From Monocercomonoides exilis PA203 (lineage: Eukaryota > Protista > Preaxostyla), in the NCBI GenBank assembly GCA_001643675.2, contig LSRY02000033.1:372001-436000 (forward strand): a stretch of 64,000 bases of DNA, given 5' to 3'. Below the pieces are notes generated by a model. The model was given only the letters and a program-made list of their open reading frames with translations. It did not search any database and was not told the origin of the DNA. A program made the translations under genes and the position numbers. Below, piece after piece: positions 38,701 to 64,000 of this stretch. Each line of letters opens with the position of its first letter. The first letter of the stretch is position 1.

Positions 38701-41700
38701 GTCGGCTGTGAAGGAGCAGGAGGCGAAAGTCAGCGAGATGATGAACGGAATTGGCTCCGGATCGAATGCAGCAAATATCGGAACAGCAGCTTCATCAGCA
38801 AACGGAAGTGCGAAAGGAAAGCAAGCAAATTCGTCCACTTCGGCTTCTGCATTGAGAGATTTATCACAATTTGAAAGGCTCATTCTCACTTTTCTTGTTG
38901 ATGTGCCTGCACAAAATGACTGTATGATCACAAAACAGACTGAACACAAAGAAACAGCAGCCAGTAAACTTCTGAAGGAGCTACTTGAAACAAGAAATCC
39001 AAATGATGCATCTGCATCATCTTCAGAAAGCTATTTAGCACATTCAGGGCAAACACACAAACAAGAGTCTTGCGAATGGCTGCTTGTGATAGCATCATAT
39101 ATTGCCTACCAGTCCAACAACAAGATTTCTACTGTCTCAACAAGAATACTTACTCATCTGTGCCGCATGAGTATACGATTCCCTCAGTTGCCTCCGCTGA
39201 TCCGCTTTTTTGGCAGCGAAAAGCACGCGATGCTTCTGAAAGACGCGATTGTTCTGAGATTCTCCGATCCAAACACTCCACACTCAGTTTCTGCTGCTGT
39301 GGTGGAGTTTATATCAGCTGCAATCGACTATCAGCCGTTGCTGGCGAAGCTGTTTGTGGAGAACGTGCTTCAATACGACGACAAAAATAGAAATGGCGGA
39401 AATCTTTCTGAAAATAACACCACAAATTATGCAGCAAACACTGCTAACGTTTTATCAGAGAATTCATTTTTGGGCTTTTCTTTGTCACTTCTCTGCGATC
39501 ATTTAGAAGAAACGGCTGACGAAAGGCCTGCGCTACTTGCTGGAACGATGCTTTTGCTCCGAAAGTTGTGGGGGAAATGCGATGTGTTTAGTGCAGCAGT
39601 TGATGCACTGGCTGAACATGAAGGCTTTTGGAAAGCTGTTCAGAGGATTGCAGAAGGAGTTGGAAAGAAGCTGATGATGATGAGCGGACGAAGAGAAGGG
39701 AAATGGGCATGGAAAGGAAAAGATAAAGAGAGTTCAGAAGAGAAGGTACCAGTTGAAGGCGAAGGAAAATTAAAAACTGAAAGCAACAATAATATCATAG
39801 ATGAACTGAGGATGATGAGAAAACAAAAGTTGAAGTGGCAGCCTGTGCTTACACCGTCATGCCTTCTCAGTGCGTATGCATCAAATGACACACAACGCTG
39901 CGCTCAGCAAAGAAATGCCAGCAAAAATGGGAATACCGAAGATTGTATTGATGCAAATGAAAATTCAGAAGACTCAATTTTGTTTCGAACTTTGCGAAAT
40001 TTGCTGAAGAAATGGGATTTCGGGGAAAAGGGAGATTTTTCCATAATAAGCGCGTTGCTTAGAGGTAGCAACGGTTCCAATTCTATTTCAACGTCGAATC
40101 AGATAACAAGAAACGGTGATCTGAATATTGATAGTGAAGTCCTACAGCGACTTGTAACATCCCAAAGAGAAGAAGAGAAAAAAATTGAAGAGATCGATAG
40201 AACAGAAACGATGGATGCGGAGCAAACAAAGGGGCTTGCAGAAGACAGACACCTGAGGGAGATGAGAAGAATGAGGAAGGAAATCAGAGAGGCACAACGC
40301 AAGAAAACCAGAACAACAAGCAGAGAAAACAATGGGAATGGTATGAGTGAAGATGAGGATGAACTTGGCGATGCTTCTGAATCATCATCTTCTTCCTCTA
40401 ATGGATTTGACATCGACTTTGAAGAAGATGACTCAAGCGATGGTATTATGTGTGAAGAAAGCAGATTAAATAAAGATTTAGCAAATAAAACAGGAACAAA
40501 AACGAGACAAAACAATGGAAATACTCATCTACCAGAAGATGCTTCACATATATTTGATAGAACATTGGAAGAAGAGCTGAAAAGAAAAAGTCGTTCTTTC
40601 TCATTTGCATACGAGAGCACTCCATCGACCTCAAAAAGCCCGAAGCCTCAAGTTATGCCAACTCTCATCTCCTCACCTTTTAACAATACATCGATACAAA
40701 GCCAGCCACTTTGGACACCAACGCTTTCTTCATCGTCTTCTGTCTACAGCAACAACGAGGAGAACATCGACGATGCGTGTGACGAGACAAATGGATTTTA
40801 TACGGAGGCAGCAATATCTTCAGTGCAGAAGTTAAATGATCAAAACCAGAATGCGATGTTTCTCGCTGGCTCTTCGTCTTCATCTTCTGCTCGTCACAGT
40901 CCCACCGCGTTTGCCTCGCTCTCGCCAAAAAGAACAGCAACTGCAATGAAGCGGATGCTGAGAGCGACGTGCCATCTTTCTGCACTCGAAACAGCGCGGA
41001 GTGTGGCGTTTGATCTGATAACAATTGAACTCTCGCTGATTTCAAGAGAGGCACAGCAGTCAATTCTTCGCGTGCTGCTTGAAGGCGAAAAGGCGATGGA
41101 AAACAACCAAAAAGCGACTGCGTCTTCGGCAACGAAGCCGTCTGACAAACTTCTCTCTGAAGTGTACATCAACAAGGCGTTCAAACTGCTTCGCGACGCT
41201 GAGCAGCGGATGAAAAATGTGGTTGGCCCGCTTCTTTCGCCTGAGTATCTGACAGAACTGACGGAATCCGTGACAGAATCGATCTCCGCCGAGCCATCAT
41301 TCCGTTCGCTTCTGTCGATTGTTTGCAGAATGAATGGAATCGATCTGGATTCATATCACTGTGCACACTCAACGCCTGAACGCTCGCTGTATTCTGGCGA
41401 TACAATGTTTGAATTCCACGCAAGTTATTTCGAAAAGGCTCTGATGATGGGATGCTTTGAAAATTCTGGTTTGAATTCATTTAGTTATTATTTAATTGTT
41501 TTTAATAAATAATTTTCTTTATTCTTTTTTAAAAAAATTGATTATTATTGTTATTCATAATAATATTATTTCCTTTAAACAAATTTTAGAAGTTTCCAAT
41601 GAACTGCTCAACGTGAGCACTTTCCCCGTTCGCTTCATTCCGTATTTGATGCGCCTTTCGAATGCTTCATCATTCCGCCGTAATTCGCGAATCCGTACTT

Positions 41701-44700
41701 TGGCTTCGTGGAAACGATTTGTGTCGACTGCAGCGCTGTGCAGATCGATGATTCCGGTGCAGCCGATATGGAAGCGCGACTCGAATGAAAATGAAAGCGA
41801 AAGCGAAAGGGATGGAAAAGCGAAACAGGGGAGCGATAGTCAATCTTCTGCTGCTTCAACAATCGGTCCTGATACGTTTGGCTTATCTTCTTCACAAAGT
41901 TATACAATGCAGGATGACAACCCTTCTTCTTCTTCTTCTTCTTCTTCTTCCAATTCAAATTCCCCTTCGCCTTCTCAAAGAGTTGTTTGTCCTTCTCCTC
42001 TTCTTAGAGCTGTCTTTCGTTCTTTAGCTGAGGGCACTCCACTCGAAGTGTTCAAACCTCTCTCATTAATTCAACAATTTTCTTCTTCTGCTGCAACAGC
42101 TTCTGCTTCTAATTCCAGACAATCAGACTTTGCTCCCTTTGAACTTATTCCTTCAACAACTGTGCATTTGCTGTGTGCCATCATTTTGGGAAGGATCACA
42201 CACATTTTTGCGAACCTTTCGCATAGCACCGACGCAGCAAAAATGTTTTCAGAGGGAAACAGATTCAGATCTGCTGACAGAGCTTTGAAAGAATTGAATT
42301 TCAGGAATAATTCTGATAACTCCAAGAACATTTCTGGTTCTCAAATGAACTCCAACAAACATAGCAGCAAAGGCACTTCTGTGTTTTCGTTCGAAGAGCG
42401 ACTTGCTGAACAAAGTGTTGCCGAAGCTGTGTTCTTGTTAAAAGCCTCAGAAAGAGCAGAAAAAATAGCGCCGGCCTCGTCAGATTCATACACTTTTTCA
42501 AGAAGCGGGAAAGGCAAGTCAACACAAATTCCTTTCTCTTCGCATTTTCTCCGAGCGGTTGTGGAGCAAAAGGAAGCTGCCAAGCAAAAAGTGACTGAGC
42601 TTATGAACGAGCTCCTGATGGTTGACGATGTTGGAAGACTGGCGCAGTTTGATGTGCTTTCGTCGCTTTTATCGCTCTTCGCATTTTTAGTCAGTTTATG
42701 CGAAGAATGCCCAAAGCCAATGAATGCAACGCACTACTTCCTTCGTTTTAGTGTTGAATCGGAATATGTTCCTGTTGATGAAATTGTGAGCGAGAAAGCG
42801 TATTCAAATAATTCAGCAAGACAAAGATGCATATTACCTCTGCAGATGCAGTTGGATCAACAAATAAACAGAACAAGTGTTGGCTCACAGACTGAATCAC
42901 AACAAGGCAAATCGTTGGAAATCAGCCAAATGGAAAGAACCAATCGATCAGTCAAGATTGTCAATGAATCTGTTCCGTTGTTTCTGCCAAGCAACATACC
43001 ACTTCCTTCCCCTTTTCAGAGCGATAGCTCGTTTGTTTTCCTCAAACAAACTTCTTATTCATCTCCAGTCCACCACGCGCTTTCCATCCGTCTCCTTTCT
43101 GCTTCATCTGTGCCTCCTTCACTCAACATCTACTCTTCCTCAAAACAAGATTCATCGAATCAAATATCCGCAACACCGACTAATTCGCAAATCAATTCTT
43201 CGTCTGCTGCTGCTTTCGACTCTCTTCTGTCTCTTCCATACTTCAGCAGGCTGACATTTGCTCCGTATTCCCTTTCCCGCCCAGCTTCTTTCCCGAAGCC
43301 GTCAGTTGCTGGACTTCCACTCTCTTTTGCTGTCTGCCTTTTCACTCAGCTTGCCAAATGTTTTGCTGCATGTTTGAGGTGTCTGTTTCCATTGAAATCT
43401 CGCCATCTGTCCGCAATCGTGTCAGCAATGACTTCACTTGTCCATCTACTCCCTGCAATTCCTTCAGTTGTACCGCTGATGAAAATGGACGAGCAGCAAG
43501 GTTTTACTCAAAACACTGCAAATTCTGTTGAAAACGTTCAGAGTACCTCGTTCGACTCTGCTCTATCTAAATCATGCAAAAATGTGGATATGCATTCGTA
43601 TGAAAAATATCAAGATAATTTTGCATCTCCAGTCATTAACGCGGCTTCTGATGCATCTTTTGCTCAGTTCTTACAGCCGACTAGCTTTGCAGATTTCGAT
43701 GAAGGACGATTGATATCTCCGATGAATCAGATGATGAGTGAAACTTCTACTTCATCTTCAGCCTCCATCCTCCAAACACACTTATCTTCTGTCACTTCTT
43801 CCATCGCTTCTCCAAAGCCAGCTGCCCGCAGGCCTCACATCTCATTTTCTGTGAATATTATTGCTGATCCAACAACTCCCCATTCATTTCCCACATTTGC
43901 ACCTGTTCCGCTTACAAAAAGCTCGGAACCTATTAACTTGGCCAATCAATCTCCTCATCTGATGAACAGTTATCACTCTTCGACGATTAACTTCAACACG
44001 CATACAGAAGAGAACGAAGGCGTGAACAACAAAAAAACAAGTGGTCACTTTGGAAACTCTAATCAAAATGAATGCGAATGCGGAAATCAATTTTCGGATA
44101 GCATTTACAATCTGCTCGTTTCTTCAGAGAATGATTTTTCTGTGTTGGATGATCGCAATGATGAAAGTGTTTCGAAACTACCATCAATCGAAGAGGATGT
44201 TTTGATGCAAAGGATGTTTTTCACTGCATTTACATCGGAGAATCACCGCTTGGATGAATCATTAATGAATAAATATTCTCAGTCATCATTTCTGACAGAC
44301 AAGGAAATGAGTGATAAACTCATAAATCAGCCTTCTCAACTTGTTTTATCTTCACAATCATTAACTTCTTATCTTGTTTCCAGACATTTCCCCATTTTCC
44401 CAACATTGTATCATTACTCTCGCTTTATTCAGCGCGTTGCCTTTAACGTTACAAGAGGTTGCATTGCGCTATTAAACTACAACACGCCAATGGCACCTCT
44501 GCGGCCAGGTTTGAAGATGATCGCATACACTCTGATTGTCTGTCTGATTCAACGCATTCTTTTCAGGCGATGCACCATCATCCCCGACATTCCACAAGGA
44601 AAGGAGAAACAGCCCATTGACGAGGAAGACTGGAACGATTCAATGCTCAAAGCTCCGGATGGCACTCCATACGCCAATGGATCAGGTGGTTATGCAAATC

Positions 44701-47700
44701 CGTCTGCTATAAAATTTGATAACCGTATGGGCTCGTCCATTCCTTCGGCCACGAACACACTTAACTTGTTTTCAAAAACGGCGGATAATGCTTATGAAAA
44801 TGAATTAAAACGGTTACAAGAAACGCCAAAAAGAAGTTCATTAACCGCGGATAGTGAAAACTCAGATATAGTTTCATGTGCAAACGAGGAGAATTGTCCA
44901 ATCAACTATAGGCAGATCATCACGCCGCTTAGCTTCAAAGGAATTATTCATTGTCTTCGATTGGACGAGCCAAGCACGCTTTCTCAGATCTTATCTGGTT
45001 TGAATATTCCCATATCGAATATCAAGCCACTTTCTTTTCTCAGAATTCCATATGACATTCCAGCAAATTCTGAAGAAACTTCCAACTTTAATCAGAAATT
45101 ATCTTTATATCCGTCTTCTACAAATTCTGCGTCTGCACAAGAAACTCCTTTCTTGCAGATGAATTCTGCTTTCATTAAATCTTATTCTACTTTTTCTCCC
45201 GCATCTCAATTTAATTTTCGCTTTGTGCAATTGAATTTGGATCTTATCCAATCTCTTCTCGTTGCCCAGCCTTTTCTGGCTTCTTTCTTTTTCAATGCAG
45301 GTCTTATCAACAAACTGAAAGCGATTGCAGATAATCTGCTTGGTACAATCAAGGAAGAACACAAAACTTGGGACAAAAGCAGGCTGGCTGCATACGGAGA
45401 TGAAGAGAGTGACTTATCTCAGATGACGCCAGCTTATTTCAGAGAAGAATTTGCCCAACAGTCTCGGCGAACGACATACCCAACGACGAATCTTCGTGCC
45501 TTTGACTCCGCTCAATCCGAAGAAGAGTTTCTGACTCAACCTTTTAATACGCCGACGATACCATACCTTCCAAACGGAGAAATAAACACTCAACACAGAA
45601 TTTGGTGCTTGATTCTGAGTGTTATCACTGCTTTCATACATGCTTTGCTTATTCAGCACAATTGGAAGAGCGTTGAATCAGCAATAAATTTTAAATTGAA
45701 GGGCAAAAATTGCTACGGAATGAGAGCAATTGATACTAAACTTGGACTGAAAGGAGTCAAAGCCTCCATTGCAATTGGGACACATTCAAATGGATCATCA
45801 TATTCTAATGACTCTGAACTCCCACCACTCATATCTGTTCTGAATGAAATAACAAGATTTGTGAATGAGCGGCTGCTGCTGATACTTCCCTCTATCGTCA
45901 GAAAGACTTATCCATATAACCATTTTACGATTGATGGACTGATTGAAGCAAGGCTGGTAATTTCTCTTGTCATAGCCATTGCACAACTTTCTAAGAAATG
46001 CGGTGAAGACACTATGAAACGAGCGCAAAGTGGAATTGATAGAAAATCACTTGGAAATAATGGAGGAAGCAGAAATAGTATGTTTGCTGAAGACGACTAC
46101 AATTATTCACCGAAGGAACAAGAAAAGGAAGATGACTCTTCTGAATCAAACGAGAGTGAAGTTAGCAATGGTAACGACTCATTGAACTATGGAACTCATA
46201 AATCGAGGTTTCTTCAAAAAGGAGATCTTATCGCAGAAGAAAGGAGACTCAGAGCCATGAAATACTTCCACGAAGATATCCAGAACTTAGCTTCACCAAA
46301 GAGAATAGAAGCTGTTTGGATGCAACTAGGGCAATCAGACGAAGGAACTTCTGAAGCGATGTTTGCTTCCTTACACAGAGCATATCCATGGACGCATCCA
46401 TCTGCATTTTTGTCAGAAATGGCGTCACAATTGACTTCGCAAAAGTTGAATTACATTTCTCAAACGCAATTTATCAACGATTACTCAAAAGATCTACCGA
46501 ATATTTCTCATGGCAAGTTGAAAAGATCGTCAGAACCAATGCAGCTATCTGGTCCACTTAGTTATTTGTCATCGACATTCCCGGCTCAATCTTTGGTTTC
46601 TAGTAAAAAGAATCGATTGAAAAAAACATATACAAAACTAACTCTAAATCGCATAGCAGCACTTGATGGCTCCGACTTCATTTTCGGTCTGACGGCGCTT
46701 CCGTCGCACCAGAAATCAGCTATGCGATCAATTCAATCTTTTCCCCGGCCTCTTCTTCCTCTTCACCCTTCAATCATTTTAGCTTTGAACGAGCTGTTTG
46801 CTTCTTTGATGCACTATTTGTCAACACCCACTTCAGTTCTCAAGGAACTTCTGCCAGTCACTTCTCAAGAAAAGGCTTCATCACTTGATCCATTTGCACA
46901 ATCGACACATTTGCTCCATTCGCAGATGCCAGAGCAGCAGTCTGTTGTTGTATCTACCATTTCTGCTCCATCTTTTTACTCTCTTTCATCCAATGCACTG
47001 CCAACAGGCTCGCTGTTCCGATCTTTGGGCTTTTCATCTGTACTTGGTTCATCGGCTTCCCGCTCATCATCAACTGGATCTAGCCTGTTATCAGATGTTC
47101 AAGCAACAGGCTCCATTGCATCTGTTGGTACATCAACAACTTCATTTACTTCTAATTCTGCTTCATCTACGGTGCTCTCATCGCCTTTCGGAGAAACGAT
47201 CATTTCTCTAATTACAACTATCATTGAACAGATTATATGCTACCTTCGAATAATCAGTCCAATGAAACTCGAGCAGCCACCTTTGCCGAAGAGACGACTA
47301 ATCATCAATGATTCGACACCATCTTCCATCGAAAATGATTTCCATCACAACAAAATAGAGCGTATTCTTCCTGAAGATTTAGCAAGAAAGAAAAAGAAAA
47401 CATTTGCTGAAAAGTCTTCCAATGAAGAAATGAAATCTTTATCAAACGATGAAACGTCTTCTTTATCTTCAATGGTAACATTACATTCAGATATACCAAA
47501 ACCTCTGAGAGTTCAACCATTTTCAGAAACACAGCAGTTTTTCAAAGATATTCCAGATATACCATGTCTTCTTTTCCTTCCTTTGACAAGCTTTTCCCAC
47601 ATTTCCACAATCCCTCCATTCACAATTCCGATATGCCTTATTCTCTCATTCATAGACTTTAACACTACATCACTCAGAACTCTAAGAAGACATCCAATAT

Positions 47701-49217
47701 TTTGTTCCATTTCTTCTTCTTCTTCAGCATCAAGCAGCTCCGCACCGTTAGCATCAATTTTATTCCGCTCTGTCTCTTCTTTGTCTGCAAACACGAAAAG
47801 CACTTTTGTGACTCCATATGCAGCCAGATCCGAACAATCTCCTTCATTTGATGCTCGTTCTCCTATGTCTGTCGGAGGAATGAAGAGACTAAACTCCATT
47901 TCTTCGATTCGCACACCATCTACGCTATTTCTTTTGAAACCTTCTCTTTCAAACAGAAGCATAGCGTGTGGAAGTTCTTCAATGGTTTCAAGGAATGAAA
48001 AGACTGTAGCATATGTGTCTGCAAATGCACGGTGGTTTGACGCTCTTAATTCAAAGAAGGCACTTCCCGGGTATATTCATCCGAATCTAGGTATTTTGAT
48101 GCCATCCTCAATTCTAGGCATTTATAAGAGAATTAAGATCAACTTGAAGAATGGTGATTTTAATGGCAATGTCTTAGATCGCATTGTTTTAGAAGCGAAG
48201 CGAAAGGATGCTGAAAAAAATTGTGTTTCTGACTTTCATTCTCCATCTGTTCTTTCAGTTTGCAGTCCTGCACAATTTTCATCAAGAAATAAATCTTTGT
48301 TATTTGGAGGAAGGCGAACGCCTCCTCCATCAACTTCGTTAGCAATGGTTTCTATCAGACAACGCTCTTTATCTCCAAATCTTTCACATTACAGCACTTC
48401 AAAATCTCTTCATCGAACTTTTTCGAGAAAGTCAACTTCAGCTGCTTTCAGTCATTCGGAATCGCTGACTCTAAGTCCAGAGATGCTCTTTTTAAAGAAA
48501 TCAGCTGATTCAACAAGAGTTTCTTTTCATATTCCTGCTCAATGCATTTCTCTTTCTTCTAAACCATTTATTGGTCAAAATACGTCATCTCATGCAAGCC
48601 AAGAGGAATCAAGCTCAACAACATTGTCCTCATTTCCACTTTCATCGCTTCAATCATCTCATATGTCTGAGGATGCGAATGCTTCCTCAAGCTCCACATC
48701 TTCCACTTCAAATTCCATTTCATATTTGCAGAATTCCCTTTCATCAGAAAATCTTTCTTTTGCTTCGCTTCAGAGCCTTCGTTCGGACATATGCAGGATA
48801 CTTCAAAATGTTACGCACTCCATTGTTATAATAGCATCTTTTGCCACTCTTCAAATACCTTCAACGTTCTTTGGAGATGATTTCGCTAAAAGCCAGATAA
48901 GAAAGTTCATCGAAACATTCTCTTGCGATTTTTCTCAATCTTACGTTGAATTTTTGAAGGAAGTAACATGCATCAAGGAATCTCTTTATGGTTTGGGTTC
49001 GACCAATGATGGAGCGAATTCGACTCAATTAAAAAATGATACTTTGAGTGAACAATTATTTGTTGATAGAATCAGCTCAAATCATTTTGGTGATTCAGTG
49101 CCATCTTCAAGTGACAGCTTACTAATTTCACATATTGAACAAGAAATAGAATTTATAGAAAAAATTGCCTCATGCATTATTTCAAGGTTAGAACAATATT
49201 GTCAGAATGATTCATGA
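32705..49217 (+). CDS. NUP188: Nup188-like scaffold nucleoporin, about 5,400 aa, 4 exons (32705-32935, 33057-33122, 33185-41468, 41590-49217)
   Basis: Three in-phase GT..AG introns join the 98-aa, 2770-aa and 2573-aa ORFs plus a 22-codon exon (16,209 nt total). Nup188-like blocks in order: ISSHFRLDEIKTAQLL, FYLNERHSLL, ESKMGSYQTLLALLRL, IASYIAYQSNNKISTVSTRILTHL, LKDAIVLRF..VVEFISAAIDYQPLLAKLF, PALLAGTMLLLRKLW..GFW. Nup205 is the alternative call. Confidence 0.75.
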
Positions 49218-49785: not shown

Positions 49786-52700
49786 TCAGTCATCTTCATT
49801 CTGATTTATTTCCTTCAACAGTTTTATTGTTTCGTCCAAAGAAGGCCTGCCCCTTGGTTCATCTGCCCACGTTTCCTCCATCAGTTCTATCAGATCTTCC
49901 CCTTCAATTCCCTCTGTCAGCGGTCGCACTCCATCACTCATCATCTCCTGCGCTTCTTCAGCATCGCATTCACTCAATGGCACTTCGCCTGTTGTCATTT
50001 CATGGAGAATCAGTCCAAGTGTGAAAACAATTGCCTTTTCTATTTCCTCATCTCCTTCTTCTGGCGCCTGCCATCGCTTCATTTCTTCCTTCTCCTTTTC
50101 ATCCTCCAATTCATCTGTCAATAGGTATATTTCATTTTCGTTCCCTTCCTCAACAAAGATTGAATACGGACACAGCTGCCTTGACATCATTTCCACCCTT
50201 TCGTCTCCAACAGAAATCAAATGCTCAAACAGCTCTGCAACTGCCAAAACCACTTCTTTCCCGTCAACAACATTCATCGCTCTTGTTCCAAGTGTGAAAT
50301 TGCCTTGCACAGAATGAATTGCTGAATGCAATGTTTTGATGTTCTTTTTCTCCTTCTCTCTAAATGGCTTCTTTGCTGATATAACATTGAACGAATGGGA
50401 TTGTTGCATCCCAGCAGCAGAATCATTCTCGGAAAATGTCAATGTAGATTCCAAATCTGGAAGATCATTTTCATTCAGTATTTCATCGTTCACTGACGGA
50501 GGTTCTGGAAGATCTTCATCGTTGTCAATGAGAAGTGGAATTTGGCTCGTCATTCCTTCCAGCAATGTCGACGGCATCTCATTCATCTCAACACATCCTC
50601 CGCTCTTTTCTTTTCTCCCCTCGACTCTTCCCATCGTTTCTCCTTCTTTCAAACTAAATTCTACAACCCTCTTTTCTGTTTCCATTAATTTTTTTCGCAA
50701 AATCACAACAATCACAACAATCACAACAAATAAAAGAATGAAAATGACAAGGATAATTGAAAGAATAAACACAATGATAGGCCAAAATGATTTTCCTTCT
50801 TTTCCTCCTTCAGCAATCCTTTCATCTCCTTTTATTTTTGATTCTGTTTTGTTTTTCAGAATAAATGAATCAGTGGCCGATGGAGAATCAGCATTTCCAA
50901 ATAAAATGCACACCCTCACTTCTGCTTCACTTGGAACGCCTTCAAATGTATTGACAGGAACAGACCCATGCACCTCTTCTTCTGATATGAAACCGCTTTC
51001 ATCAAACAAATTTTTCTCAACCACCTCTTCATCTCCAATAGCAATAACTGTATTGAACGACAGGTTACAAGGAAGGAGAATTGATCCTCTGAACACGAGA
51101 TTTACCTTCTCCCCTGACTTTTCCGATGACACACTCTCCACCTTCGGGATGAAAAACGCAGATGCTCTTTCTCCTGCAATCCCTTCCAGTGTGCATCCTT
51201 CTTCCAATATCCATAGCGAGGTGTTGTCTTTCGCTCCATCCCCTCCCTTCAAACTCACAACCCTCAATTTTGCTGAGTCTCCACACAGAATGTTTCTTCT
51301 TATCGATTCATAATTCGCTATTGACGGATTATTGTTTTCGAATTCCCCTTTCTCAATCTCCACACTTCCTCCTGACAATGAAAGCCCGCCGTTCTTCGAG
51401 TTGCTGATTGTTGTGTCTTTCATCCCAACATTGCTGGATTGAACATCCACAATTGACCCATTCCACTGACACAGCTCTTCTAATGACTCTTCATTTGAAC
51501 TCAACTCTTGTGCGCCTGTCGTTCCATCAAATGCACACAAAGATAAGTTAACATCCGATAAATCTGTCAAAGTAGCAATTCTCCCCTTTTCCGAGGACGA
51601 GATGCATTTTTGGTTGGTGTAGTTCTCCAATTCCACCAATAAAGACGAAGGCAAAGACGAAGAAGAAGCAGCTAAACAGCACGGGCCAAACGAATTTCTG
51701 GTTATGTTTTGAAATGAAGACTGCTTCAATCTGAATTCTGAGTCATTTGATTTCACGCTCACTGCACATCCTTCCATAAGCATCGCGTTGGAAATGGCCA
51801 AGAAATTCATTTCGACATTTGCCTCTTCGCATTCAACAGAAATCAAGGATTCCTTTAAAACGTGTATATCGTCGAATTTCAAGTGGCTGCATTGGATGTT
51901 TAATTGGCCTCCTGAACCGTCTGAGGAAAGCACAATCAAGCTTGTTTTGCTCTCTGCATTCTTGATTTGAACCTTCTGGAGCTGAGAGTCTTTGCAGTTC
52001 AGAAGGATGAGAGCGGATCGATCAAACATGCAGCTTGAAACAAGCAACTGCTGCATGGACAGGCTTGCCAAATTGCGAAAATCAAATAACTCTCCACAAC
52101 TCATATCAGAAATGTTCAGTTCCATTAACAAGCAATATTGTCCGCCTCTTGCTGCCACGCATGAAGAACTGAGACAAAGGGAAGCAAAAGTGCACCCGTT
52201 GATTGATAGTCTTCCATTCTCCACGAGAATGATAGAGCAGTTCAATTTCGTTTCAGAGTTTCCAGTCGGATCTTCTTGAGTAAATGCTGCCCCTGAAATA
52301 GACAAGTTGCCATCAGTCAGCGATATTAAGCTGGTATGCGAAGAAGAAAATGCACTTCCAAACAGAATCTTCAGAAATTCCATTTTCACATTCGACGAGC
52401 ACGTAACAAGACTGTCTGTATTGCTCTCGACGGAGCAGTTCAGGTGGAGCACCCCTTTGTCGCTTTCCTGCTCCAGCGACTTGATCGTCACATCGCGAGC
52501 TCTTGCTTCCCCTGTCACCTTAGCGCTTTTGTTGATGAGCAAATTGCTGTAAGCTGAAGGAATGATGTGGGGCAGAGCAACATTCAAGGAAATGCAAGGT
52601 TCGCTTATTCCACCGCACTGGCGCGTGTCAGAGGCATTGTCCGCTGAAGAAGATGCAAATATCGTCTCGCTCTGATACACAACCACAAAAAGCAAGAAAT

Positions 52701-55700
52701 CTTGCTCATCATAATAATTCTGTTCTGTGCATCCCCACATAGCAAATTCTCGGACAAATGGAGGTCTGAAATCGAGCTGGAAGAGCTCGATGTTTATTTG
52801 AGATTTGATATTTGTGCATCGCACATACAAGTCTCTCCCCTTGAATGCCTTGTTATTCATGAAAGTTGTGTTTTCCAACAGAAAAGGAAGCAAGCCTTCA
52901 CTTGTGATCAAAGAGCAATCCAGAAATATTGCTCCTCCCCTTCCAGTCTCCGAGCAGAAGCACTCCGAGACAGCCGAAAAACGGCACTCGAAAAATCCCC
53001 CTTCGTTCAATTTCATAATCATTCCTCCCCCTTTCTCGCTTTGGCTGCTTCCGCAATTCTTGATCAATGTGTTTTGCACAGACACGCTGCAAGGCTCGCT
53101 GCCAGTGCAGCTGATGATGGAGGGCTCAGATGGTGCACTTTGGAGAAGCGAATGGAGCGTGCAGCATTTCAGTTGCACCGTTGTACTGCCGCCTTCATTC
53201 AATCTCTGAGACTCGCCTTTCCACTCAGCCTGAGCCAACACTGCAACAATGCTTTTACCCATCAGTTCCATGTTGTTCATTGAAACATTTGTCAAGTCAA
53301 TGCTGCTTCCATGTGATACCATCAGAATGTGTCTTTCGGCTTTGATGGATTGGAACGAGCAGAATGATAATTCGCACGTTCCAAACAGGCAGGCAACAAC
53401 ACAATAAGGAATGGCTGCCTCAGAAGCGCTGGTGAAGGAGCAGCCTTGAGCTGCAAAGGAGCTGCCAGTTGTGCTTATGAGTTTTGTCTGCTTCCATTCA
53501 GATCCATCCCAGCAGCAGATCTCAATATAAATGAGGGAGCATGTGCCTGCGTTTGTCAGCACAGAATCGCTATCTTCTTCCTTTCCTGCTTGAGGTGAAA
53601 TGGCTGCTCCGAAAGTCAAGACAGAACGAGACTTGGCATCAACCGAAGTCATAGTGACGTTTGAAATGTCAACCTCACAGTTCACCTGAGCTTCATCGAC
53701 GATCAAAAAAGTGTTCATGCTTGATTGTGCTGGATCTTCCAAAGCACGAAAATGTTTTTGCCCATACTCCATTGTTGAACATGGCTCTTCTGCACTCCCA
53801 CATCGGAGAACATCCCACCCGCTGTTCTTGCTGAGATGGATTTCTTGAGATGCAAATCCAATCAGAAATCGGCAAAGATCGAAGTTTGTCTTCGTGCTGT
53901 CGTTCCCAACGAACAAGTTTGTGTTGCTTGCTGTCTCACTCACTTCAAATGCTAATGTCTGTTTTGTAATCGAAACATTCAGGTCTGACGAAAGAAAGAA
54001 CATGTTTTTCCCATACTTTGCAGAGCATTGATTGAAGGCTATCTGCTGGAAGGAGAACGCATTGGAAGTCGTACAGTCAAAATAGATGCCGCCTCCCTTT
54101 CCACCTGCTTCACTTTCAGCGTAGCAGTTTGTGAATGTAGCGTTTTCCATCGTAAATTGCCCTTGAGCTTCAACGACGATTTTCATTGCTCCTCCATCCA
54201 TGCTCTGAGCGCCTTTGGCATTCGTGACATTCCAATGCAAACACTCAACATGGCTTGAAATTGAGGATGAAATTAGCACAGCGCTGTTTGCATCGCCGTT
54301 GGTGATCCCTTCAAAAGAGCATTGTGAAAGAGAAATAACCTCATCACTCGTCGCACCATCATTCAACAGTTTGAATGGTGATGATGGTATCACATGAATC
54401 AGAGGATAATCACCAAGGATAATTTCTTTCACTTTCAGCGAGATAACCGTCGGAGCTGCGATGCCATTCTCGCTAACTGCAATAGGTGCTTGACAGAGGC
54501 AGCCTAAATCAATCTGGCAGTCATCAATATTGAGTATCCCTCCACAGATCTGAAACATCCAGTAACTTATCTGGCTGGGCTCTCCCATTTGCACCCCAAA
54601 TGCGCACTTTGTCAACGACAGGTTGCTCTCAGAAGCAAAGAATATCAACGTTTCTATCTCAGCATCAAACGAAGATGGTAGCAAAAAGTGGATTGATTCG
54701 ATAGATACATTCCCCGTGGCTGAAATCACTTTTCCGCTCAAAGCATTCAGCGACTTGATACAGGTTACTCCAGCTCGCAAATCATCTGATGATCTCAAGA
54801 TAAAATTGTGCAGATTCATTTCGTTTTTGATTGTTGCTGAGTCAATAACAGCAATTGTCTTCACATCCAATTCTACCAGTCTTTTCACACAATAATCAAC
54901 CGATTTGCACGGATAATCCGAGAACCCACACACCACAGTATCGGCTCCATCGTTGCTTCCTGCATGGATTGTGCTTTCAACATCCTCCAGAAACAGAACC
55001 AACGGAATCGAATGCTCGTGATCATTTCCATTGAACCCACGCAAATCATCAAAGCAGCTATGACCCAGTGCATAAGCAAAAGGAAGAGTTTCATTTGTTA
55101 TCGATTCTCGGAGGTCTGGCGATCGAACAAACAAATCGTTTCCATGCTTCGCTTTGTTTGGCTTTTCTGACGTAAAAGAAGGATCTGTCATGGCAAATGC
55201 TGAATCTGAGTTCTCAAGATTCAGAAAGATCCCTCCCCCAAATCCCTCCTGCGAATCGAAAGGCGCCTCGCACTCTTCGAAGGAACATCGAGAAATTGTT
55301 GTTGAACATGTGTTTGGTAACGAGATGAACAGCGCCCCACCTCCATTTCCATCACCAGAAACAATGCAATGCTCAAAAGTGCATTTGTTTATTGAAGAAT
55401 CACAGCTATCCTCAAACCCTTCGCTCCACACTGCATTCAGGCATCCTCCGTTCTGCTCGCTCTCAACATTCAAAAAAGAAGCATTCGAAAGAGAGACAGA
55501 TTTGCAATCCGACAAAGCAATTGCACAGCCTTGCGAAAATCCAAATCCAGAGACATTCACAAATTTCATCGTTAACGAACCTTCTTCAACCTGAATCAAG
55601 GATTTTGTTGATGGCAGAGTCGATTGGGAGCTTTTCGCAAAACTGCACAGCTCCAGCTCAAGCAACCCAGAGGAGCCGACTGCAATTGCAGATCGGTTGG

Positions 55701-57731
55701 ACACACAAACAAATTGAATCCTCTTTGCATTCAGTGAACCATTGCCAATGGAGATCAAGCAGTCATTTGACGAGGCTTCGTTGCACTTTATTGCAGTTGA
55801 GTTGTTCTCTGCTCCGCTGAGAACGATATTTCTCCAGTCGATATCAATCATATCTTCTTTGAATTCTTCACTCGACATCAAAACATTTTGCCCCAAATAT
55901 GAATTCCATCTTGTCACTCCATATTCCACCGTTTTGCATTCCGAGCCTGTTCCCCCACAAGTGTTCACATTGCTTCCAGAATAGCTGATGTGTATTTCAG
56001 GCTGAGCAGTTGGTAGATAAGAATTATATGCAATTCCTCTATCTCCGCACAGCGGAGAATATTCGACGCATTGTACAACTTTTCTTTGGGCAGTTGAAAG
56101 CGAAAAACTTTGCAATATTTGAATTGTGTAATTATCCAAGCTAAATCCCGTTCCAATGAAAATATCTGCGGCATGCGTCGTTTTCTGCACTGTATTGTTT
56201 TCAAACAAGCAAAACTGTATTTTGACGTTCATATTAAAGATATTTTCGGAAGCGTCAAAGCCACCTGCTCCCATTGGAGCATCTCCATCATATAAATAAC
56301 AGTTTGACATCACAAAAATACTCCTTGGCTCTTGTAGAAAAACTGTTCCAGCATGACTGAATAATGCTTTATTGTCTTTGAACACAGAGTTGTAAATTGA
56401 TCCACTTCCTCCAAGATGCCATGCAACACTTCCTCCATAAGCTGCTGAACAATTTTCAAAAGAACAGCAAAGAATCAAAGCAAAATTATTTGTAATATGA
56501 GCAAATGCTCCTCCGATGGATTGTGCTCCCGTTCCTCTGCAACAATTAAATAAAGAATTTTCAATGTTGCAATCAGTTCCATTGCTAAAAATTGCTCCTC
56601 CATAACCATATGTGTTCGGAAACGTATCAGTGCATTTGGTAAATGTGCATTTGTCAACAGTGAGCTTGGCACTGTTGCTAACTGTTATTGCACCACCATG
56701 AACAGCGCTGCATTCTGTGAAAATGCAATCTTCAAATCTCACATCTTCTTCTGAAAAGGATTGGGCTGCATTTATATAGTTCTGATGGAAAATAGTATTT
56801 CTCGAGCAAAAAAAAGAAGTGTTCAAAGAGTACAAAAAATTTACGAGAGAATCCGAAATGAGAACGCTATAAATTGGATTCTCACAGTTATGAAATTCAC
56901 AGTTTTTCATTATGCATTTAAGCGGATTTCCTTTGAGAAAGATAGAATATTCGCATGCTTTCATGGTTGTGGTGTTTTTAAAAATGCTGTTTGTAGTTGA
57001 GACTTCAAGAAAATCAGCATCGGAAATCAATGGTGAAATACAAGTTAATAATGATTGGAATGAGCAAAATTCAATAAAAATGTAACTGCAACGAGTGTGT
57101 TTTTTGTGCATTTTGGATGCATCCGATTGGGTAAATTGCTTAGGAAATGATTGATAAATAGATGTGTTAAAAATTATAAATGTTCCATCGATACAATCCA
57201 AAATTGAATCCAATGAACATGAATATAAGTTCAAAGTGCAACAATGTAACCCTAATGAGGAATTTAAATATTGTCTTGTAAACATTTGAAAACCAGAAAG
57301 TCGTATGTTTACGTTGAGCAAATTTAGAGAAGTGTTAAACAATGAAATTTGTGTTTTCAATGTACTGATCTGTTTCACAAAAGCTCTTCCAATCGTTTCC
57401 TCAATTCTGTTGCTTCTTCTTTGAATTGACTGAAAGTTGAGACAACTCGAAATTTCAGCATTGGGATTCTGTAAAGAATTATTGAAGTATTGCTCTGATT
57501 GTTTTAAGTTTATGAAATAAGCATTATTTTTATATAGCAAATACAACTTTTACAACTATGATTGGAAAATGTATATTTATCACTATTTTTGCACACGCTC
57601 GCATTTTCATCTGAAAAAAAAGCTAAATGGTCAATATAACCCTGCGAAACAATCCTTTCACATTGAATTTTACTCATAATTGCTACGATGAATAAATGCA
57701 TTATAAAGTTAAATTTTACTGCGTCCATCAT
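49786..57731 (-). CDS. Single-pass receptor-like protein: beta-helix repeat ectodomain, transmembrane helix, truncated pseudokinase
   Basis: 2586-aa ORF with GGAI/FxxC/FxxN repeats and four CGxxxxxC caps (~55950, 54920, 53790, 52600); TM FWPIIVFILSIILVIFILLFVVIVVIVVIL-RKK (~50695-50790); C-terminal RWQAPE, VFTLGLILHEMTTGEVP, W..EP..RPS. The signal-peptide-like start is in the overlapping ORF 57731-57510, joined by a short intron or frameshift (unresolved). Confidence 0.88.
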
Positions 57732-58147: not shown

Positions 58148-58636
58148 ATGTGTCTAAATTTTTTTAAAAAGTTCCTTTTGTTTAATTTCAAATTGAATAA
58201 AAATTCATATTTCGATCAAATTTCTGTTTCTACTCAACAAATTTTGTTGTTATGAAAATAATAATACTGCTGAGGTTTTGTTTCCATTCTTGAAAAGTTT
58301 CGTAAGTGGGAACAGCAATTTTATCAAAATATGAAATTTTTATATCATTTAATAATTAAACAAAAGGAACTTTTCAAAAAATTTTAGACATGTGTCAAAA
58401 TTTTTTTGAAAAGTTCCTTTCGTTTAATTTTCTAATAAAATAAAAATTTCAAATTTCGATCAAATTTCTGTTCCCACTCACCAAAATTTATTTCCATGAT
58501 AATAAAATCTTGACAATGTTATTATATCCATTTGAGTGAATTATTGTGAGTGGAAACAGAAATTTGATAGAAATATGAAATTTTTTATTTTTTGAAAATT
58601 AAACAAATGGAACTTTACAAAAAAATATTGACATGT
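58148..58636. mobile_element. Tandem dimer of a ~240-bp MITE-like element with ~85-bp imperfect TIRs
   Basis: ATGT-[GTCTAAATTTTTTTAAAAAGTTCC...GGAACTTTTCAAAAAATTTTAGAC]-ATGT-[GTCAAAATTTTTTTGAAAAGTTCC...GGAACTTTACAAAAAAATATTGAC]-ATGT. Confidence 0.85.
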
Positions 58637-59611
58637 GAAAAAAAAAAAGAATTTATTTTTATAATTGCGTAACATACAACAAATGATTAAAATTTGTGTT
58701 ATTAATTATAACGTTATTGTTAACTGTTTCAAAAGTTATTCTGTCTCTCTTTTGTTCGGAAACATTTATTTTTGTGTGTGTCAACTTGTTATTCAGCTCT
58801 AAATATGTCGTTGAACAAAAATTTTGACATCAATAATAAAATTTAACAATTATCTTAATAAACAGATTTATAATTGAAATTCGACTGGAAGGCACACAAA
58901 CATGCTTTGAATATGCTCAATTCAACTTGTCACAAATTTGAATCGAGCTTTTTTGATCCGAGTCAAATTATTTTTTGATTTTTTTTAACTGAGCAATTTA
59001 TTAAACAGAATTCAACCCCTTCAAGTTGATTTTTGTTTCAACTCACTCATTCAAACTGCGATAAAAAAAGCGAATTAATATAAACCCTAAAAAATTCATT
59101 TATTTCATTGAAAATTATACTGAATTTTGAATTTTCACGAAAATTGAAAATAACATTTTTTCACAGTTTTTGCAAACAATCGGCAGAATAAACTTATGTG
59201 CACAATATGCTATTTTCATAGCTGCGACATATGACAATAATGTAACCGGTCGAATCTTACGCATTAACCTTTATTTTTTGAAATACATACGAGGTCACAA
59301 AGCATTTTGTTATCTTATCAATAAAATTTGAATACGAAAATGAAAGTCAAATTTATTTTGAAATTTAATTAAGTTTAATAATGAAATAAGTGAAATAATT
59401 ATTTCATGCTTTGTGGAAAAAAAAATCAAAATTTTTCCTTAAATGATGTCAATTTATATTTTTTATATATCATTTTTATTTTTTAGAAATATTTATTACA
59501 AAATAGTTATTGGCAAAGAAACAGAAAGTGCTTTGACAATAACATTTTTCAATATTCAGGGAAACGATAAGGAAATAGACAAATTCATATTGCTCAAAAA
59601 ATTCTGGACTT

Positions 59612-60226: not shown

Positions 60227-60628
60227 AATCTTTTATTAGTTTTTAAAATTTGAAAAAGAAAATTGTGTTTATTAAAAGATTGCGAAAATTTTTTTTTAAA
60301 ATTAACAACATTCAAATGTGTTGATTGAGTTTCATCTATACGTGCAATTAAATGAATAAGAACAAGGAAACGAACACTGAGTGGAAGAAATGATTTTAAT
60401 GCCTTTTTTACTTCTTAAGTTTTCAAAAAAAAAAAAAATAACGAAAAATATTTTTCTATTGCTGCGCAACAAAATGTTTTATTCCTCATTTATATTATTA
60501 TTTTATTTAATTTTAACCAAATATAACAATTATGCATATTTTGAAAAAATCAACACAAATTTTATTGGAAATATTTCTACTGAGGGAACGGATCATTTCA
60601 CAAAGCCACTTTTTTCATTATTGACGCA

Positions 60629-63600
60629 ATGGCAAGTATTTTGCCAGTTATGCTTCGCATATTTTTATTAATGCATTTTGGCCTTACAGTATATGAAGAA
60701 AACACTCTGCAATATTCTGCGTTAATCGGAACAAAGAGACAATTATCATATTTTTTCGATTTAAAAAATTCTACGCTTTTTTTAAATGCTATTTTGTTAC
60801 ACCAAGATTCAAATATTCCATTAATTACTGTTGACTTATATTCCAGCCTTCATCTTTCTTTATGTAAATTTGTAATTTCTCATAACTTTAGTTCATCACC
60901 ACTTATTGTTCAAGGAACTGTATCCCTTGAAAATTTTCAAATCAAAACTGAACATAATTTACCTTCTTCTTGCTCTGTTATATCCTGTCTGCAACATTCA
61001 GCGTCAATTTCTGTTCAGAATTCATTATTTAACTCAAATTCTTTTTACTCAACAAATTCTTTTCTGATATCGGGATATCATAGAGAATTGCATATTGGCA
61101 ATTGCATTTTTAGGAATATGTCAACATGTTCTCAAGCGAAAATTGCTTTTGAAAATTCACCTTCACAACCTTTTGCAAATGTTCAAAACACAATTGTTGA
61201 ACAAACTTTGAATCCTTGGGCCACACTTTTTTCCGAAAGTACTTTTTTCACTTCAATCAAAGTGAGTAATTCCTCAATTTGCAAATGTTTGAATTCAAAA
61301 AATGCCATTTACAGTAATTTGCTTTTATTTAGCGATACAACATTTTCTAATGTGACAGCTCCAAGTGGATCAAAAGGTGGTATTCTTTTGTTAAAAGACA
61401 TGATTTCATCATCATTTAATGCATGTTCTTTTATATGCTGCTGCGTGGGATGTCCAGATCAAACACCAAAAATTCAAGGTGGAAGCGGTGGATGTTTGTG
61501 GATTGGATCAATCAAAGGAGATTGCAGAATTTTTCGTTGCAATTTTTCTAGCTGTTATGCAGAAGAGACTGGAGGAGCTTTGACTGCACTATCAAATCAC
61601 CATCCAATTTATATCAAACAAACACAGTTTGTAAGATGTTTTTGCGGTGCTTGCAAAAAGAGATCATCTAATAAAGATAATGTGAAAGAATCATTCATTC
61701 AAAAAGATGGATACAACAAATGCAATGGTGGAGGAGCCATATTTGTTAGCAGCGGAGGAGGAATTGAAATGGATGATTGCAAAATTGAAGAATGCAAGAG
61801 TAATGGAGTTGGTGGAGGAATTTTATTTGACCTGAATGATATTGAATTATTAACTGAAATTAATGTTACATTGTGCCGTTTCGTAAGATGTTTTGCTGAG
61901 TATTGCGGTGGTGCTGTTGCTTTTTTTTTCAACAAGAAATTTGAATGCATTTCCTATTTAAATGCATTTGAATTTTCTTTTTGTTCTTTTGATCATAATT
62001 TTGTCCTTCAACAAAATTCTAAACATGATCAATTGAACTTACAGGAATTTTCTCAAACGTTGGCCGCAATTAGAAATGAGTATGTTGGTGAGATGGATGA
62101 ATCAGATATATTTATGAATGTTCCATGTGAATCTATGATGAGCACAAAATATTTTATAAATTGTTCATTTACAAATTCTCGTTGCAAAACGATTGACGAT
62201 GATAACAACACAATATTAGATCTTTTCTCGAAAGAAAAGAACGACACACATTTTGCGGAGAATGAAAACTTCAGTCAAAACAATTTAATAAAGAGTAACA
62301 CCATCAAAAAACAGAATGTTGGATCTGTATACGTTTCTGTAGAAGGAAATGATGAAAATTCTTGTGAGACGCAACAAGATTCTTGTGAATCAATAAACAG
62401 AGCTAAAGAACAATTGACTGAGATACCAAACATAATCATTATAATCAACACTGGAAAAGTGATTAATGAAATAACATTAGAAGATACAACATTACAGCCT
62501 CAAGCAGATTTAAATTATGTAGCAATACAAGTATCATTAAATAACTATCAACAATCACAATTTGGATTATTAAACTTTAAAGGAATATCATCAATTTATT
62601 GGACAAAAATAAAAGTAGGTCCGACGATCCATCACGAAGCGTTGATTTATGTGGAAGAGGGAGAGCTGAGGATCAGGAATGTTGGAGTTGTGGAAGAAGG
62701 GACGGGCGGGCTTGAGTTTGCGATAGGGATGATTGGGGCGGGGAGCGGAACGATTGAATCAGTGACGGTTGAAGGGCTGAGCTTTATGTCAGCGGTGTTT
62801 GCGGTGCTGGAAGGAGGGTCTGTGAGTATGAAAGGGGTGACGCTGAGCAAGTTGGGGATTGGGGCAGCAGACAAAAAAGCGAGTGCGATTGAATTGGCGG
62901 TTGGGGAAGGGCAGACGGCTACGATTGAAGGGTGCAAATTTGAAGAGATTGATGGGAGCACGATTACAGAAGGGAAAGGAGGAGCGATGAATGTGAGACT
63001 GGCTGGAAGCGGAAAACTTGAGGTGAAGACGACATCGGTGGTGAAATGCAAAGTGAATGAGGAAAGCGGGCGTGGAGGTGGGATGTATGTGCAGCTTGAA
63101 GACGGGTCAGGGAACGATTACAAATTTAATCTGGAGAAGATGGAAAATAATGGAGGGTTTAAAGGGCGAGACATATATTTGTCAGCGGAAGACTTGAAAA
63201 GTGCAGCATTGAGGAACAAGTTTGATTTTGGGATTTGGGAGGAGAGTTATGACCGTGTGAATGCGCTGTATGGAGAAGATCGTTTGAGAGAAGAGAGGGA
63301 TGTTGATTTGTTCGCGCTGTGGGAATACACGGGGAGCGATGTATACATTGGGCAGAGCGGGAAGGATATTGACTATTGTGGAGCGCACGATGATCCGTGC
63401 AAAAGTGTAAACTACGGAACGAAGCATCTGAAAGGAGGGGATAAACGGCTTGTGATTATTGATGAAGGAGAGTTTACCGACGAGTTCAGTGCTGAAGATG
63501 TTTCGATGGAGGGGGAAAGCACAACGGAGATGAAAGGTGTGAATGTTGTACTGGAAGAGAAAGCAGGAGCGACGAAGGGAGGGATGACGAGCAAAGGGAT

Positions 63601-64000
63601 ATCGAAGGTTGAATGGATCAGATTCAAAGTAGGTCCGACGATCCATCACGAAGCGTTGATTTATGTGGAAGAGGGAGAGCTGAGGATCAGGAATGTTGGA
63701 GTTGTGGAAGAAGGGACGGGCGGGCTTGAGTTTGCGATAGGGATGATTGGGGCGGGGAGCGGAACGATTGAATCAGTGACGGTTGAAGGGCTGAGCTTTA
63801 TGTCAGCGGTGTTTGCGGTGCTGGAAGGAGGGTCTGTGAGTATGAAAGGGGTGACGCTGAGCAAGTTGGGGATTGGGGCAGCAGACAAAAAAGCGAGTGC
63901 GATTGAATTGGCGGTTGGGGAAGGGCAGACGGCTACGATTGAAGGGTGCAAATTTGAAGAGATTGATGGGAGCACGATTACAGAAGGGAAAGGAGGAGCG
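60629..64000 (+). CDS. Secreted/surface beta-helix repeat protein (>1,120 aa, 3' end beyond window)
   Basis: MASILPVMLRIFLLMHFGLTV start (signal-like); frame consistent to the window end (..EGKGGA); GGIL/GGCL/GGAL/GGAI motifs; YVSVEGNDENSC..CESI and YIGQSGKDIDYCGAHDDPCKSV caps. An alternative start at 60474 in another frame is not excluded. Confidence 0.82.
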   Translation, partial: MASILPVMLRIFLLMHFGLTVYEENTLQYSALIGTKRQLSYFFDLKNSTLFLNAILLHQDSNIPLITVDLYSSLHLSLCKFVISHNFSSSPLIVQGTVSLENFQIKTEHNLPSSCSVISCLQHSASISVQNSLFNSNSFYSTNSFLISGYHRELHIGNCIFRNMSTCSQAKIAFENSPSQPFANVQNTIVEQTLNPWATLFSESTFFTSIKVSNSSICKCLNSKNAIYSNLLLFSDTTFSNVTAPSGSKGGILLLKDMISSSFNACSFICCCVGCPDQTPKIQGGSGGCLWIGSIKGDCRIFRCNFSSCYAEETGGALTALSNHHPIYIKQTQFVRCFCGACKKRSSNKDNVKESFIQKDGYNKCNGGGAIFVSSGGGIEMDDCKIEECKSNGVGGGILFDLNDIELLTEINVTLCRFVRCFAEYCGGAVAFFFNKKFECISYLNAFEFSFCSFDHNFVLQQNSKHDQLNLQEFSQTLAAIRNEYVGEMDESDIFMNVPCESMMSTKYFINCSFTNSRCKTIDDDNNTILDLFSKEKNDTHFAENENFSQNNLIKSNTIKKQNVGSVYVSVEGNDENSCETQQDSCESINRAKEQLTEIPNIIIIINTGKVINEITLEDTTLQPQADLNYVAIQVSLNNYQQSQFGLLNFKGISSIYWTKIKVGPTIHHEALIYVEEGELRIRNVGVVEEGTGGLEFAIGMIGAGSGTIESVTVEGLSFMSAVFAVLEGGSVSMKGVTLSKLGIGAADKKASAIELAVGEGQTATIEGCKFEEIDGSTITEGKGGAMNVRLAGSGKLEVKTTSVVKCKVNEESGRGGGMYVQLEDGSGNDYKFNLEKMENNGGFKGRDIYLSAEDLKSAALRNKFDFGIWEESYDRVNALYGEDRLREERDVDLFALWEYTGSDVYIGQSGKDIDYCGAHDDPCKSVNYGTKHLKGGDKRLVIIDEGEFTDEFSAEDVSMEGESTTEMKGVNVVLEEKAGATKGGMTSKGISKVEWIRFKVGPTIHHEALIYVEEGELRIRNVGVVEEGTGGLEFAIGMIGAGSGTIESVTVEGLSFMSAVFAVLEGGSVSMKGVTLSKLGIGAADKKASAIELAVGEGQTATIEGCKFEEIDGSTITEGKGGA
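62612..64000 (+). repeat. In-frame tandem repeat, unit 1,014 bp (338 aa); visible overlap identical
   Basis: AAAGTAGGTCCGACGATCCATCACGAAGCG starts at 62612 and at 63626. 62612-62986 matches 63626-64000 with no difference seen; the antisense ORFs ending at 62647 and 63661 translate identically. Confidence 0.93.

Follow-up and report, generated by a model that had tools for sequence, protein, structure and literature searches.

The DNA analysed here (the window) is a stretch of 64,000 nucleotides of Monocercomonoides exilis PA203, taken from contig LSRY02000033.1 (C29; the window is C29:372001-436000). Near its right-hand end a giant gene begins, and inside this gene, from window position 62612 (C29:434612), a 1,014-bp (338-codon) unit is tandemly repeated 2.40 times. 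The resulting array is 2,438 bp long and reaches beyond the window edge, with a third, partial copy lying outside. The locus is a genuine intragenic tandem array in a giant, kinase-less gene for an adhesin-like membrane protein, and the codons of the array are G-rich, unlike those of the AT-rich sequence on either side. The features of the gene and of the array are as follows, with window-equivalent positions given beyond the edge.

60629..64000, + strand: 5' part of the giant gene; the frame is open from window position 60584, and the first ATG is at 60629.
60629..62611, + strand: AT-rich N-terminal region; G at third codon positions (G3) 0.08-0.15; the last ~96 residues form the start of a beta-helix module.
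62579..62611, + strand: last 33 nt of the AT-rich flank (KGISSIYWTKI), the in-register homologue of the unit end KGISKVEWIRF.
62612..63625, + strand: copy 1 of the 1,014-bp G-rich unit; G 37.8%, C 11.3%; 5' junction at 62611/62612.
63626..64000, + strand: in-window part of copy 2 of the unit, which extends to window-equivalent 64639.
Window-equivalent 64640-65049, + strand: copy 3 of the unit, partial, 410 bp; AT-rich sequence then resumes in register, at unit phase 411.

A DNA search of the whole genome (82,301,135 bp in 101 contigs) placed the copies of the unit at C29:434612-435625, 435626-436639, and 436640-437049, arranged head-to-tail and all 100% identical. Compared with itself at an offset of 1014, the sequence had no mismatch over window positions 62612-62986 (62986 being the last comparable position inside the window), and there were 0 mismatches among the 1,424 compared positions of the array copies. 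Upstream of 62612, the two registers at this offset are essentially unrelated. The first-pass annotation, which was made from the letters of the window alone, had described the two visible copies as identical; this proved correct, and the identity continues beyond the window edge. The array can be written as A-B-A-B-A, with A of 410 bp and B of 604 bp, and is flanked by the end of a module upstream and by a B-like segment downstream. The period limit of Tandem Repeats Finder (500) is smaller than the 1,014-bp unit, so the array is invisible to that program.

The array sits in register with the modules that surround it. In phmmer alignments the upstream module matches unit positions 242-337 and stops at the junction, and after partial copy 3 the AT-rich sequence goes on from unit position 138 with no shift. 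The last ~96 residues of the N-terminal region continue in register into the array, and eight further, very divergent modules were found along the same open reading frame (ORF) when the unit was used as the phmmer query. The predicted beta-helix domain begins at a CG...PC motif at about unit residue 243, so both array junctions are internal to a domain, at about residues 97 and 233 of the rotated, modelled module. The proposal that the switch falls mid-module, at a homologous position, is thus borne out by the phmmer register and by the model-based domain bounds. At the nucleotide level the KGISSIYWTKI flank is ∼61% identical to the unit end (counted by eye), with a longest exact run of 5 nt. 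The edges of the composition shift coincide exactly with the edges of identity at both ends of the array, which speaks for one event that defined the tract or for a process limited by the repeats.

The ORF ends at C29:445288, 9.3 kb beyond the window edge, and comprises 4,234 open codons (4,219 from the ATG). Its translation starts with a hydrophobic, signal-peptide-like N-terminus and closes with a hydrophobic (transmembrane) helix followed by KKRRKKRRRRKKK and a short tail; the tail behind the transmembrane helix is basic, has 45 residues, and includes KKRRKK. A Pfam search found no kinase domain in any part of the ORF. With the unit, the N-terminal region, and the downstream modules as queries, no Pfam family matched at E ≤10, the chlamydial Pmp and beta-helix repeat families included. 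Judged from its sequence, the gene appears to encode a kinase-less, type-I membrane, adhesin-like protein of right-handed beta-helix modules. A chimeric misjoin of two genes at 62612 would produce an abrupt change of composition such as the one seen here, and the public gene model begins nine residues before the junction. However, neither junction breaks the reading frame or the module register, the 4,234 codons stay open from the signal-like N-terminus to the C-terminal transmembrane helix, and beyond the array the gene returns to its AT-rich sequence; we find a misjoin barely credible.

The 338-codon unit is exactly one beta-helix module long. For an alignment with 24 modules of other family genes, we rotated the unit so that the CG...PC motif came first; in this 25-module alignment, C14, G15, C21, G251, and G252 are invariant. 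The AlphaFold (AF2) model of the rotated unit had a predicted local distance difference test score (pLDDT) of 89.8 and a predicted template modelling score (pTM) of 0.88, and was all-beta, with 24 short strands. Almost all of the top 50 Foldseek matches were beta-helix proteins (pectin methylesterases, pectate and alginate lyases, and phage tailspikes; probability 1.00). The best structural match, pectin methylesterase 1xg2_A, had template modelling scores of 0.54/0.57, and the Foldseek E-values were only 3e-3 or weaker. With a confident model in hand, we assign the predicted fold of the module to the right-handed parallel beta-helix. The module resembles in its predicted fold the pectin methylesterases, the tailspikes, and adhesins of the autotransporter/Pmp type, but it differs from these proteins in having no sequence-family match and only 7%–13% identity to its structural matches. 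It shows no sign of enzymatic residues, unlike the beta-helix enzymes, and, unlike the known beta-helix proteins, it occurs as one of many successive modules within a single eukaryotic membrane protein.

The module belongs to a large family. Candidate family sites numbered 5,015 across the genome; 119 of them were scored, and all of these were 25%–34% identical to the unit. Word-indexed and exhaustive searches recovered hundreds of related giant proteins (1,500-8,000 residues) in M. exilis, Blattamonas nauphoetae, and Streblomastix strix, as well as in a few metagenome fragments; one relative from Blattamonas nauphoetae carries the source name "adhesin-like". Family modules span ∼340-390 residues, with a CG..PC start motif and the end motifs GRGGG, G.DI....., and DLF..W, and many family proteins end in a C-terminal kinase domain. 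The product of the array gene has the modules that characterize this oxymonad family of giant beta-helix ectodomains and lacks the combination of a transmembrane segment with a kinase. Its modules are homologous to those in the ectodomains of the tyrosine-kinase-like receptors of M. exilis, but it ends in a transmembrane helix and the 45-residue basic tail, unlike the receptors that end in a kinase. By sequence, the array gene is a kinase-less member of the oxymonad beta-helix ectodomain family that supplies the ectodomains of the M. exilis receptor kinases. Tyrosine-kinase-like proteins are the largest gene family of M. exilis and overlap its "unclassified repeats" (PMC6759080, PMC8767320); these two M. 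exilis papers mention neither the ectodomain modules nor their codon style nor internal arrays.

The public annotation likely mis-models the array gene. The database model, P0001 (3,231 aa), begins at window position 62588, just ahead of the junction, with an added MR, and leaves out a 650-residue N-terminal part that includes the signal-like sequence. Within the array it equals the ORF without exactly one 338-residue unit, and thus holds 1.4 units. An exact look-up of P0001 returned no record, and a 300-residue query spanning the junction had no match among proteins of 165-525 residues; both blanks say little. The genome was assembled with Canu from Oxford Nanopore Technologies (ONT) reads and polished with Nanopolish and Pilon (ten rounds), and the assembly paper states that annotations were carried over from an older 454 assembly by mapping of coding sequences (CDSs) with gmap/PASA.

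One alternative, then, is that the unit and its junctions are real but that assembly or polishing produced a wrong copy number (the true one being 1.4 or many more) or erased differences between copies, as could happen if short reads were placed randomly among equal repeats during the Pilon rounds. The exact one-unit shortfall of P0001 would fit this, as would the uneven polishing of multi-copy DNA reported in the assembly paper and the presence of a scaffold of nearly the same size as the array's contig among the three that were corrected by hand. On the other side, the 2.4-kb array is well inside ONT read length and the 12.7-kb frame is intact. Moreover, P0001 is more simply, and probably, the collapsed-repeat CDS of the older 454 assembly, mapped with a 1,014-nt gap, as a gmap/PASA transfer would allow; if so, both junctions are independently supported. 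We regard an artefact of this kind as unlikely, although it deserves to be kept in view.

We searched for a donor of the unit. The DNA search found no copy in the 82.3-Mb genome beyond the array itself. At the protein level, the best other match among the 119 scored of the 5,015 candidate sites was 33% identical, an exhaustive HMMER search of 1.84 billion representative proteins returned at most 36% identity apart from the gene's own product, and a word-indexed protein search found no donor. The first-pass annotation had suggested cassette exchange between loci, and had named a DNA search for donor loci as the way to examine it. That search, with only the array as its result, argues against such exchange, as does the want of a second locus at the protein level; there is likewise no copy elsewhere in the genome of the kind that a cassette archive would hold, 33% being the best other protein match.

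The unit is also far from its neighbours. In the multiple alignment it is 22%–33% identical to neighbouring modules, the same as any two modules, and about equally far (20%–25%) from all 24 aligned modules. Its second half is closest to the module just downstream (43% over 160 residues by local alignment), and in the multiple alignment the two are 33% identical, no nearer than some other pairs. Lineage-specific changes numbered 41 vs. 37, with no rate acceleration of the unit, and the replacements in the G-rich lineage lean toward G-rich codons (28/41 vs. 17/37; counted by the author). We considered whether the unit might be newly derived from its neighbours by accelerated change, and the 41 vs. 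37 lineage-specific replacements do not support this. Instead, the alignments suggest that the unit represents an old, distinct module lineage, of which only the duplication would be young.

These data also bear on a cassette import, in which a G-rich block of at least 1.4 units would have been copied by gene conversion or double crossover from a lost, unassembled, or foreign paralogue, allele, or strain. The agreement of composition and identity edges to the base at both ends would suit an import, and so would the distance of the unit from its neighbours combined with its unaccelerated change, which together indicate that it was not recently derived from the flanks. But no donor was found in the genome or among the representative proteins, and the 43% similarity of the second half to the downstream module is a weak hint of native origin. 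Homologous exchange with a diverged donor at exactly these junctions appears unlikely from the sequence, because the flanks are only ∼60% like the unit in nucleotides, with exact runs of at most 5 nt, which is too little for homologous exchange there. Overall, we consider an import quite unlikely.

The codon style of the array is its unusual aspect: it is G-rich in a strand-specific manner and unlike what canonical GC-biased gene conversion (gBGC) would leave. Third-position G is 0.08-0.15 in the 700 upstream codons, 0.34-0.49 in the array, and 0.10-0.14 just downstream, a profile that confirms the abrupt flip from AT-rich to G-rich coding sequence first reported at ∼62612. First- and second-position G also approximately doubles inside the array. 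At fourfold sites, G is 0.62 in the unit vs. 0.15 in the rest of the gene, and C is 0.02 vs. 0.09, respectively; the C fraction of NAY codons (those ending in a pyrimidine after A) is unchanged, at 0.33 vs. 0.36. The shift is concentrated in GGG, GCG, GTG, ACG, CTG, and TTG, with AAG and GAG (among AAR and GAR codons) up only slightly, and is accompanied by more Gly, Glu, Val, and Ala residues. The GC content is 0.49 in the array vs. 0.31 in the flanks, the CpG observed/expected ratio is 1.20 in the unit vs. 0.77 in the rest of the ORF, and G-runs occur at 35/kb in the unit vs. 4.5/kb elsewhere in the ORF. The unit has no G-quadruplex motif (four G-runs with loops of ≤12 nt).

Two simple accounts of this style were ruled out. 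The actin and alpha- and beta-tubulin genes of the same genome have G at only 4%–6% of fourfold sites, which excludes codon optimization. A-to-G hypermutation or editing of an AT-rich ancestor is excluded by a comparison of aligned third positions between the unit and the nearest AT-rich module, where T>G changes (24) were as frequent as A>G changes (23) and T>C was also common.

The same style recurs across the family. Of 27 family loci, 14 had G-rich stretches (G, or C for minus-strand genes, ≥0.33), and the G skew was always on the coding strand, whichever way the gene was oriented. Fourfold-site G correlated with identity to the nearest paralogue (Spearman's rho 0.38, P = 7e-5, 106 modules), and the correlation held when the modules were collapsed to 24 clusters (rho 0.45, P = 0.026), in a sample that is biased to modules resembling the G-rich query and includes related, non-independent copies. 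At the extremes, the four modules with fourfold G below 0.15 had no near relative, and modules at 0.51-0.57 had partners at 97%–100%. The association between G-richness and repeat identity, which the first-pass annotation had proposed to look for across the family, therefore holds.

Individual sets of paralogues show how the style is distributed. In all four paralogues on contig C44 (L027, L028, L013, and L026; ∼2,700 aa each), the first module is AT-rich, and a G-rich body takes over close to where the second beta-helix module begins. At fourfold sites the G-rich body is 92%–95% identical and the AT-rich head 78%–87%, so the body has the more recent common ancestor. The inverted paralogues L122 and L123 (C63:264189-268046 and 173410-177267) are 94% identical, and L122 is G-rich throughout its 3.9 kb (GC 0.46-0.59, GC skew 0.24-0.85); the style can thus span whole gene bodies. 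Two further inverted module pairs, L045/L046 on C25 and L095/L096 on C27, are 100% identical within the pair, and their members are separated by 100 kb and 12 kb, respectively. In the G-rich paralogue sets, singletons that lose a G outnumber those that gain one (178 G>X vs. 115 X>G, P = 3e-4), which indicates that mutation erodes G, and singletons in the AT-rich head are balanced (31 vs. 35). G-rich tracts are therefore either young or upheld by a fixation-level force such as biased conversion, and across the family G-richness seems to mark recently homogenized DNA.

GC-biased conversion between the tandem copies had been raised by the first-pass annotation as a possible source of the composition. 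The array has some of the expected properties: its GC is well above that of the flanks, and the shift is coextensive with the homogenized DNA. In multigene families and tandem arrays that undergo GC-biased conversion, composition shifts are likewise limited to homogenized DNA and run against AT-ward mutation. However, the M. exilis bias concerns G on the sense strand only. The unit exceeds the rest of the gene in fourfold G (0.62 vs. 0.15) but has less fourfold C (0.02 vs. 0.09), NAY codons show no T-to-C rise, AAG and GAG barely increase, and the bias follows the coding strand in both gene orientations. This pattern rules out canonical gBGC as the origin of the style, and that the process lifted the GC of the array is, in our estimate, highly improbable.

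Selection on mRNA or translation is another candidate. Rare codons ending in G and modules rich in Gly, Glu, Val, and Ala might be favoured in expressed copies, for instance by slowing translation or by avoiding A-rich processing signals, and AT-rich copies would then drift. The style does follow the sense strand, it is specific to certain codon boxes and not a uniform A-to-G shift, and AATAAA is absent from the unit. Yet AAATAA is not depleted there, the highly expressed actin and tubulin genes avoid G at fourfold sites, and the AT-rich parts of the array gene itself keep 10 kb of open frame and must also be under selection. Selection would not, moreover, yield edges that match the repeat edges, and we judge this explanation very unlikely.

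Our preferred reading, which we hold to be probable, is a very recent tandem amplification of a module in the "recently homogenized" G-rich style of the family. The copies would have arisen, or been last homogenized, very recently (their divergence is below ∼0.2%), the mechanism being unequal homologous exchange or replication slippage among copies of the module. The simplest start would be a G-rich A-B module adjoining an older module whose A part had been overwritten; from there, slippage or unequal exchange involving the two A copies would need to happen only once for a unit to be gained. The unit contains an integral number of codons and its ends are in register; each gain or loss would therefore keep the frame and amount to one beta-helix module, and the identical units could drive further variation in ectodomain length. 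The sharp composition edges would be the bounds of a young or recently homogenized tract in an old AT-rich gene. The G-rich style, in turn, would be a mark of family segments with near-identical paralogues, eroded by G-to-A mutation once the copies diverge.

Several points weigh against this reading of a recent amplification. The copy number and perfect identity rest on a single ONT/Pilon assembly, whose authors warn of uneven polishing in multi-copy DNA, and the database gene model holds only 1.4 units. An import from an unassembled G-rich donor would explain the razor-sharp edges more simply. The L045/L046 pair is 100% identical and yet has a fourfold G of only 0.28 (the other identical pair has 0.51), so duplication alone does not produce the style, and the family-wide correlation has the sampling bias noted above. 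Finally, no internal repeat of at least 80 nt was found in 3.6-3.9-kb pieces of six other family loci; such arrays are uncommon within the family sample.

Taken together, the first-pass proposal of a recent in-frame homogenization by crossover or conversion stands as far as a recent, in-register duplication or homogenization is concerned, and is not supported as to swapping between loci and canonical GC bias. Its suggestion of a surface-variation mechanism fared similarly: a change of copy number is plausible for an in-frame module repeat, but cassette swapping lacks support, there being no second locus.

Repeats of a comparable type are well known in adhesins. The yeast FLO/ALS, streptococcal alpha C/Rib, and staphylococcal SasG/Aap proteins have long, in-frame, near-identical repeats inside surface proteins, and recombination between the units of adhesin genes alters copy number and protein length. 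The M. exilis array, with its near-identical, in-frame, head-to-tail units of 3 x 338 nt, has the form of these recombination-prone repeats, and it too lies in a surface-type protein. By analogy, the tandem duplication itself would be of an ordinary, known kind for adhesin genes. The M. exilis array differs from the known adhesin repeats in having only 2.4 copies, read from one assembly; in a unit that has the length of a whole 338-residue beta-helix module, with the array ending inside domains; and in a codon style sharply unlike the rest of its gene. With such an array, the cell would be able to make a surface protein longer or shorter in steps of one beta-helix module. The sole sign of a varying copy number is the P0001 model with its 1.4 units, which may stem from collapse of the repeat in the older assembly.

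More useful than the array may be the composition rule to which it led, namely, that recently copied or homogenized DNA of this family is G-rich on the sense strand. Highly expressed genes prefer the opposite kind of codon, and G-to-A mutation wears the style away. If the rule is family-wide, it would suggest that conversion or repair is biased in a strand-asymmetric way that differs from canonical gBGC, and conversion tracts could be dated by a simple marker in this family, to which a large share of the 35% of the genome classed as "unclassified repeats" belongs. M. exilis is, to our knowledge, the only eukaryote without mitochondria. We can tentatively imagine, although we would not bet on it, that the organism has a sense-strand-specific, G-ward conversion or repair process acting wherever family segments are homogenized, with silent-site G serving as a homogenization clock. 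Such a process might be linked with transcription, or with R-loops that form on G-clustered non-template DNA. The array (fourfold G 0.62, 100% identity) would then be its freshest product, and G-clustered tracts might promote further recombination, in a self-reinforcing renewal of surface-protein modules.

The rest of the window holds further members of the family and other giant ORFs, as follows.

299-16345, - strand: decayed family member of ∼16 kb, with module matches, no ORF of ≥150 aa, and ordinary AT-rich composition.
33200-49217, + strand: two directly adjoining giant ORFs of 2,770 and 2,573 aa; GC patchy (0.40-0.50); no match in Pfam.
49786-57546, - strand: receptor-kinase family member, a 2,586-codon ORF with C-terminal PF07714 (E 2e-7).

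The first of these looks like a long decayed pseudogene of the family. The receptor-kinase gene sits tail-to-head with the kinase-less array gene, 3 kb upstream of it. The very AT-rich spacer upstream of the array gene (GC ∼0.2) contains a tandem repeat of its own, two copies of a 244-bp sequence (79% match) at window positions 58148-58637.

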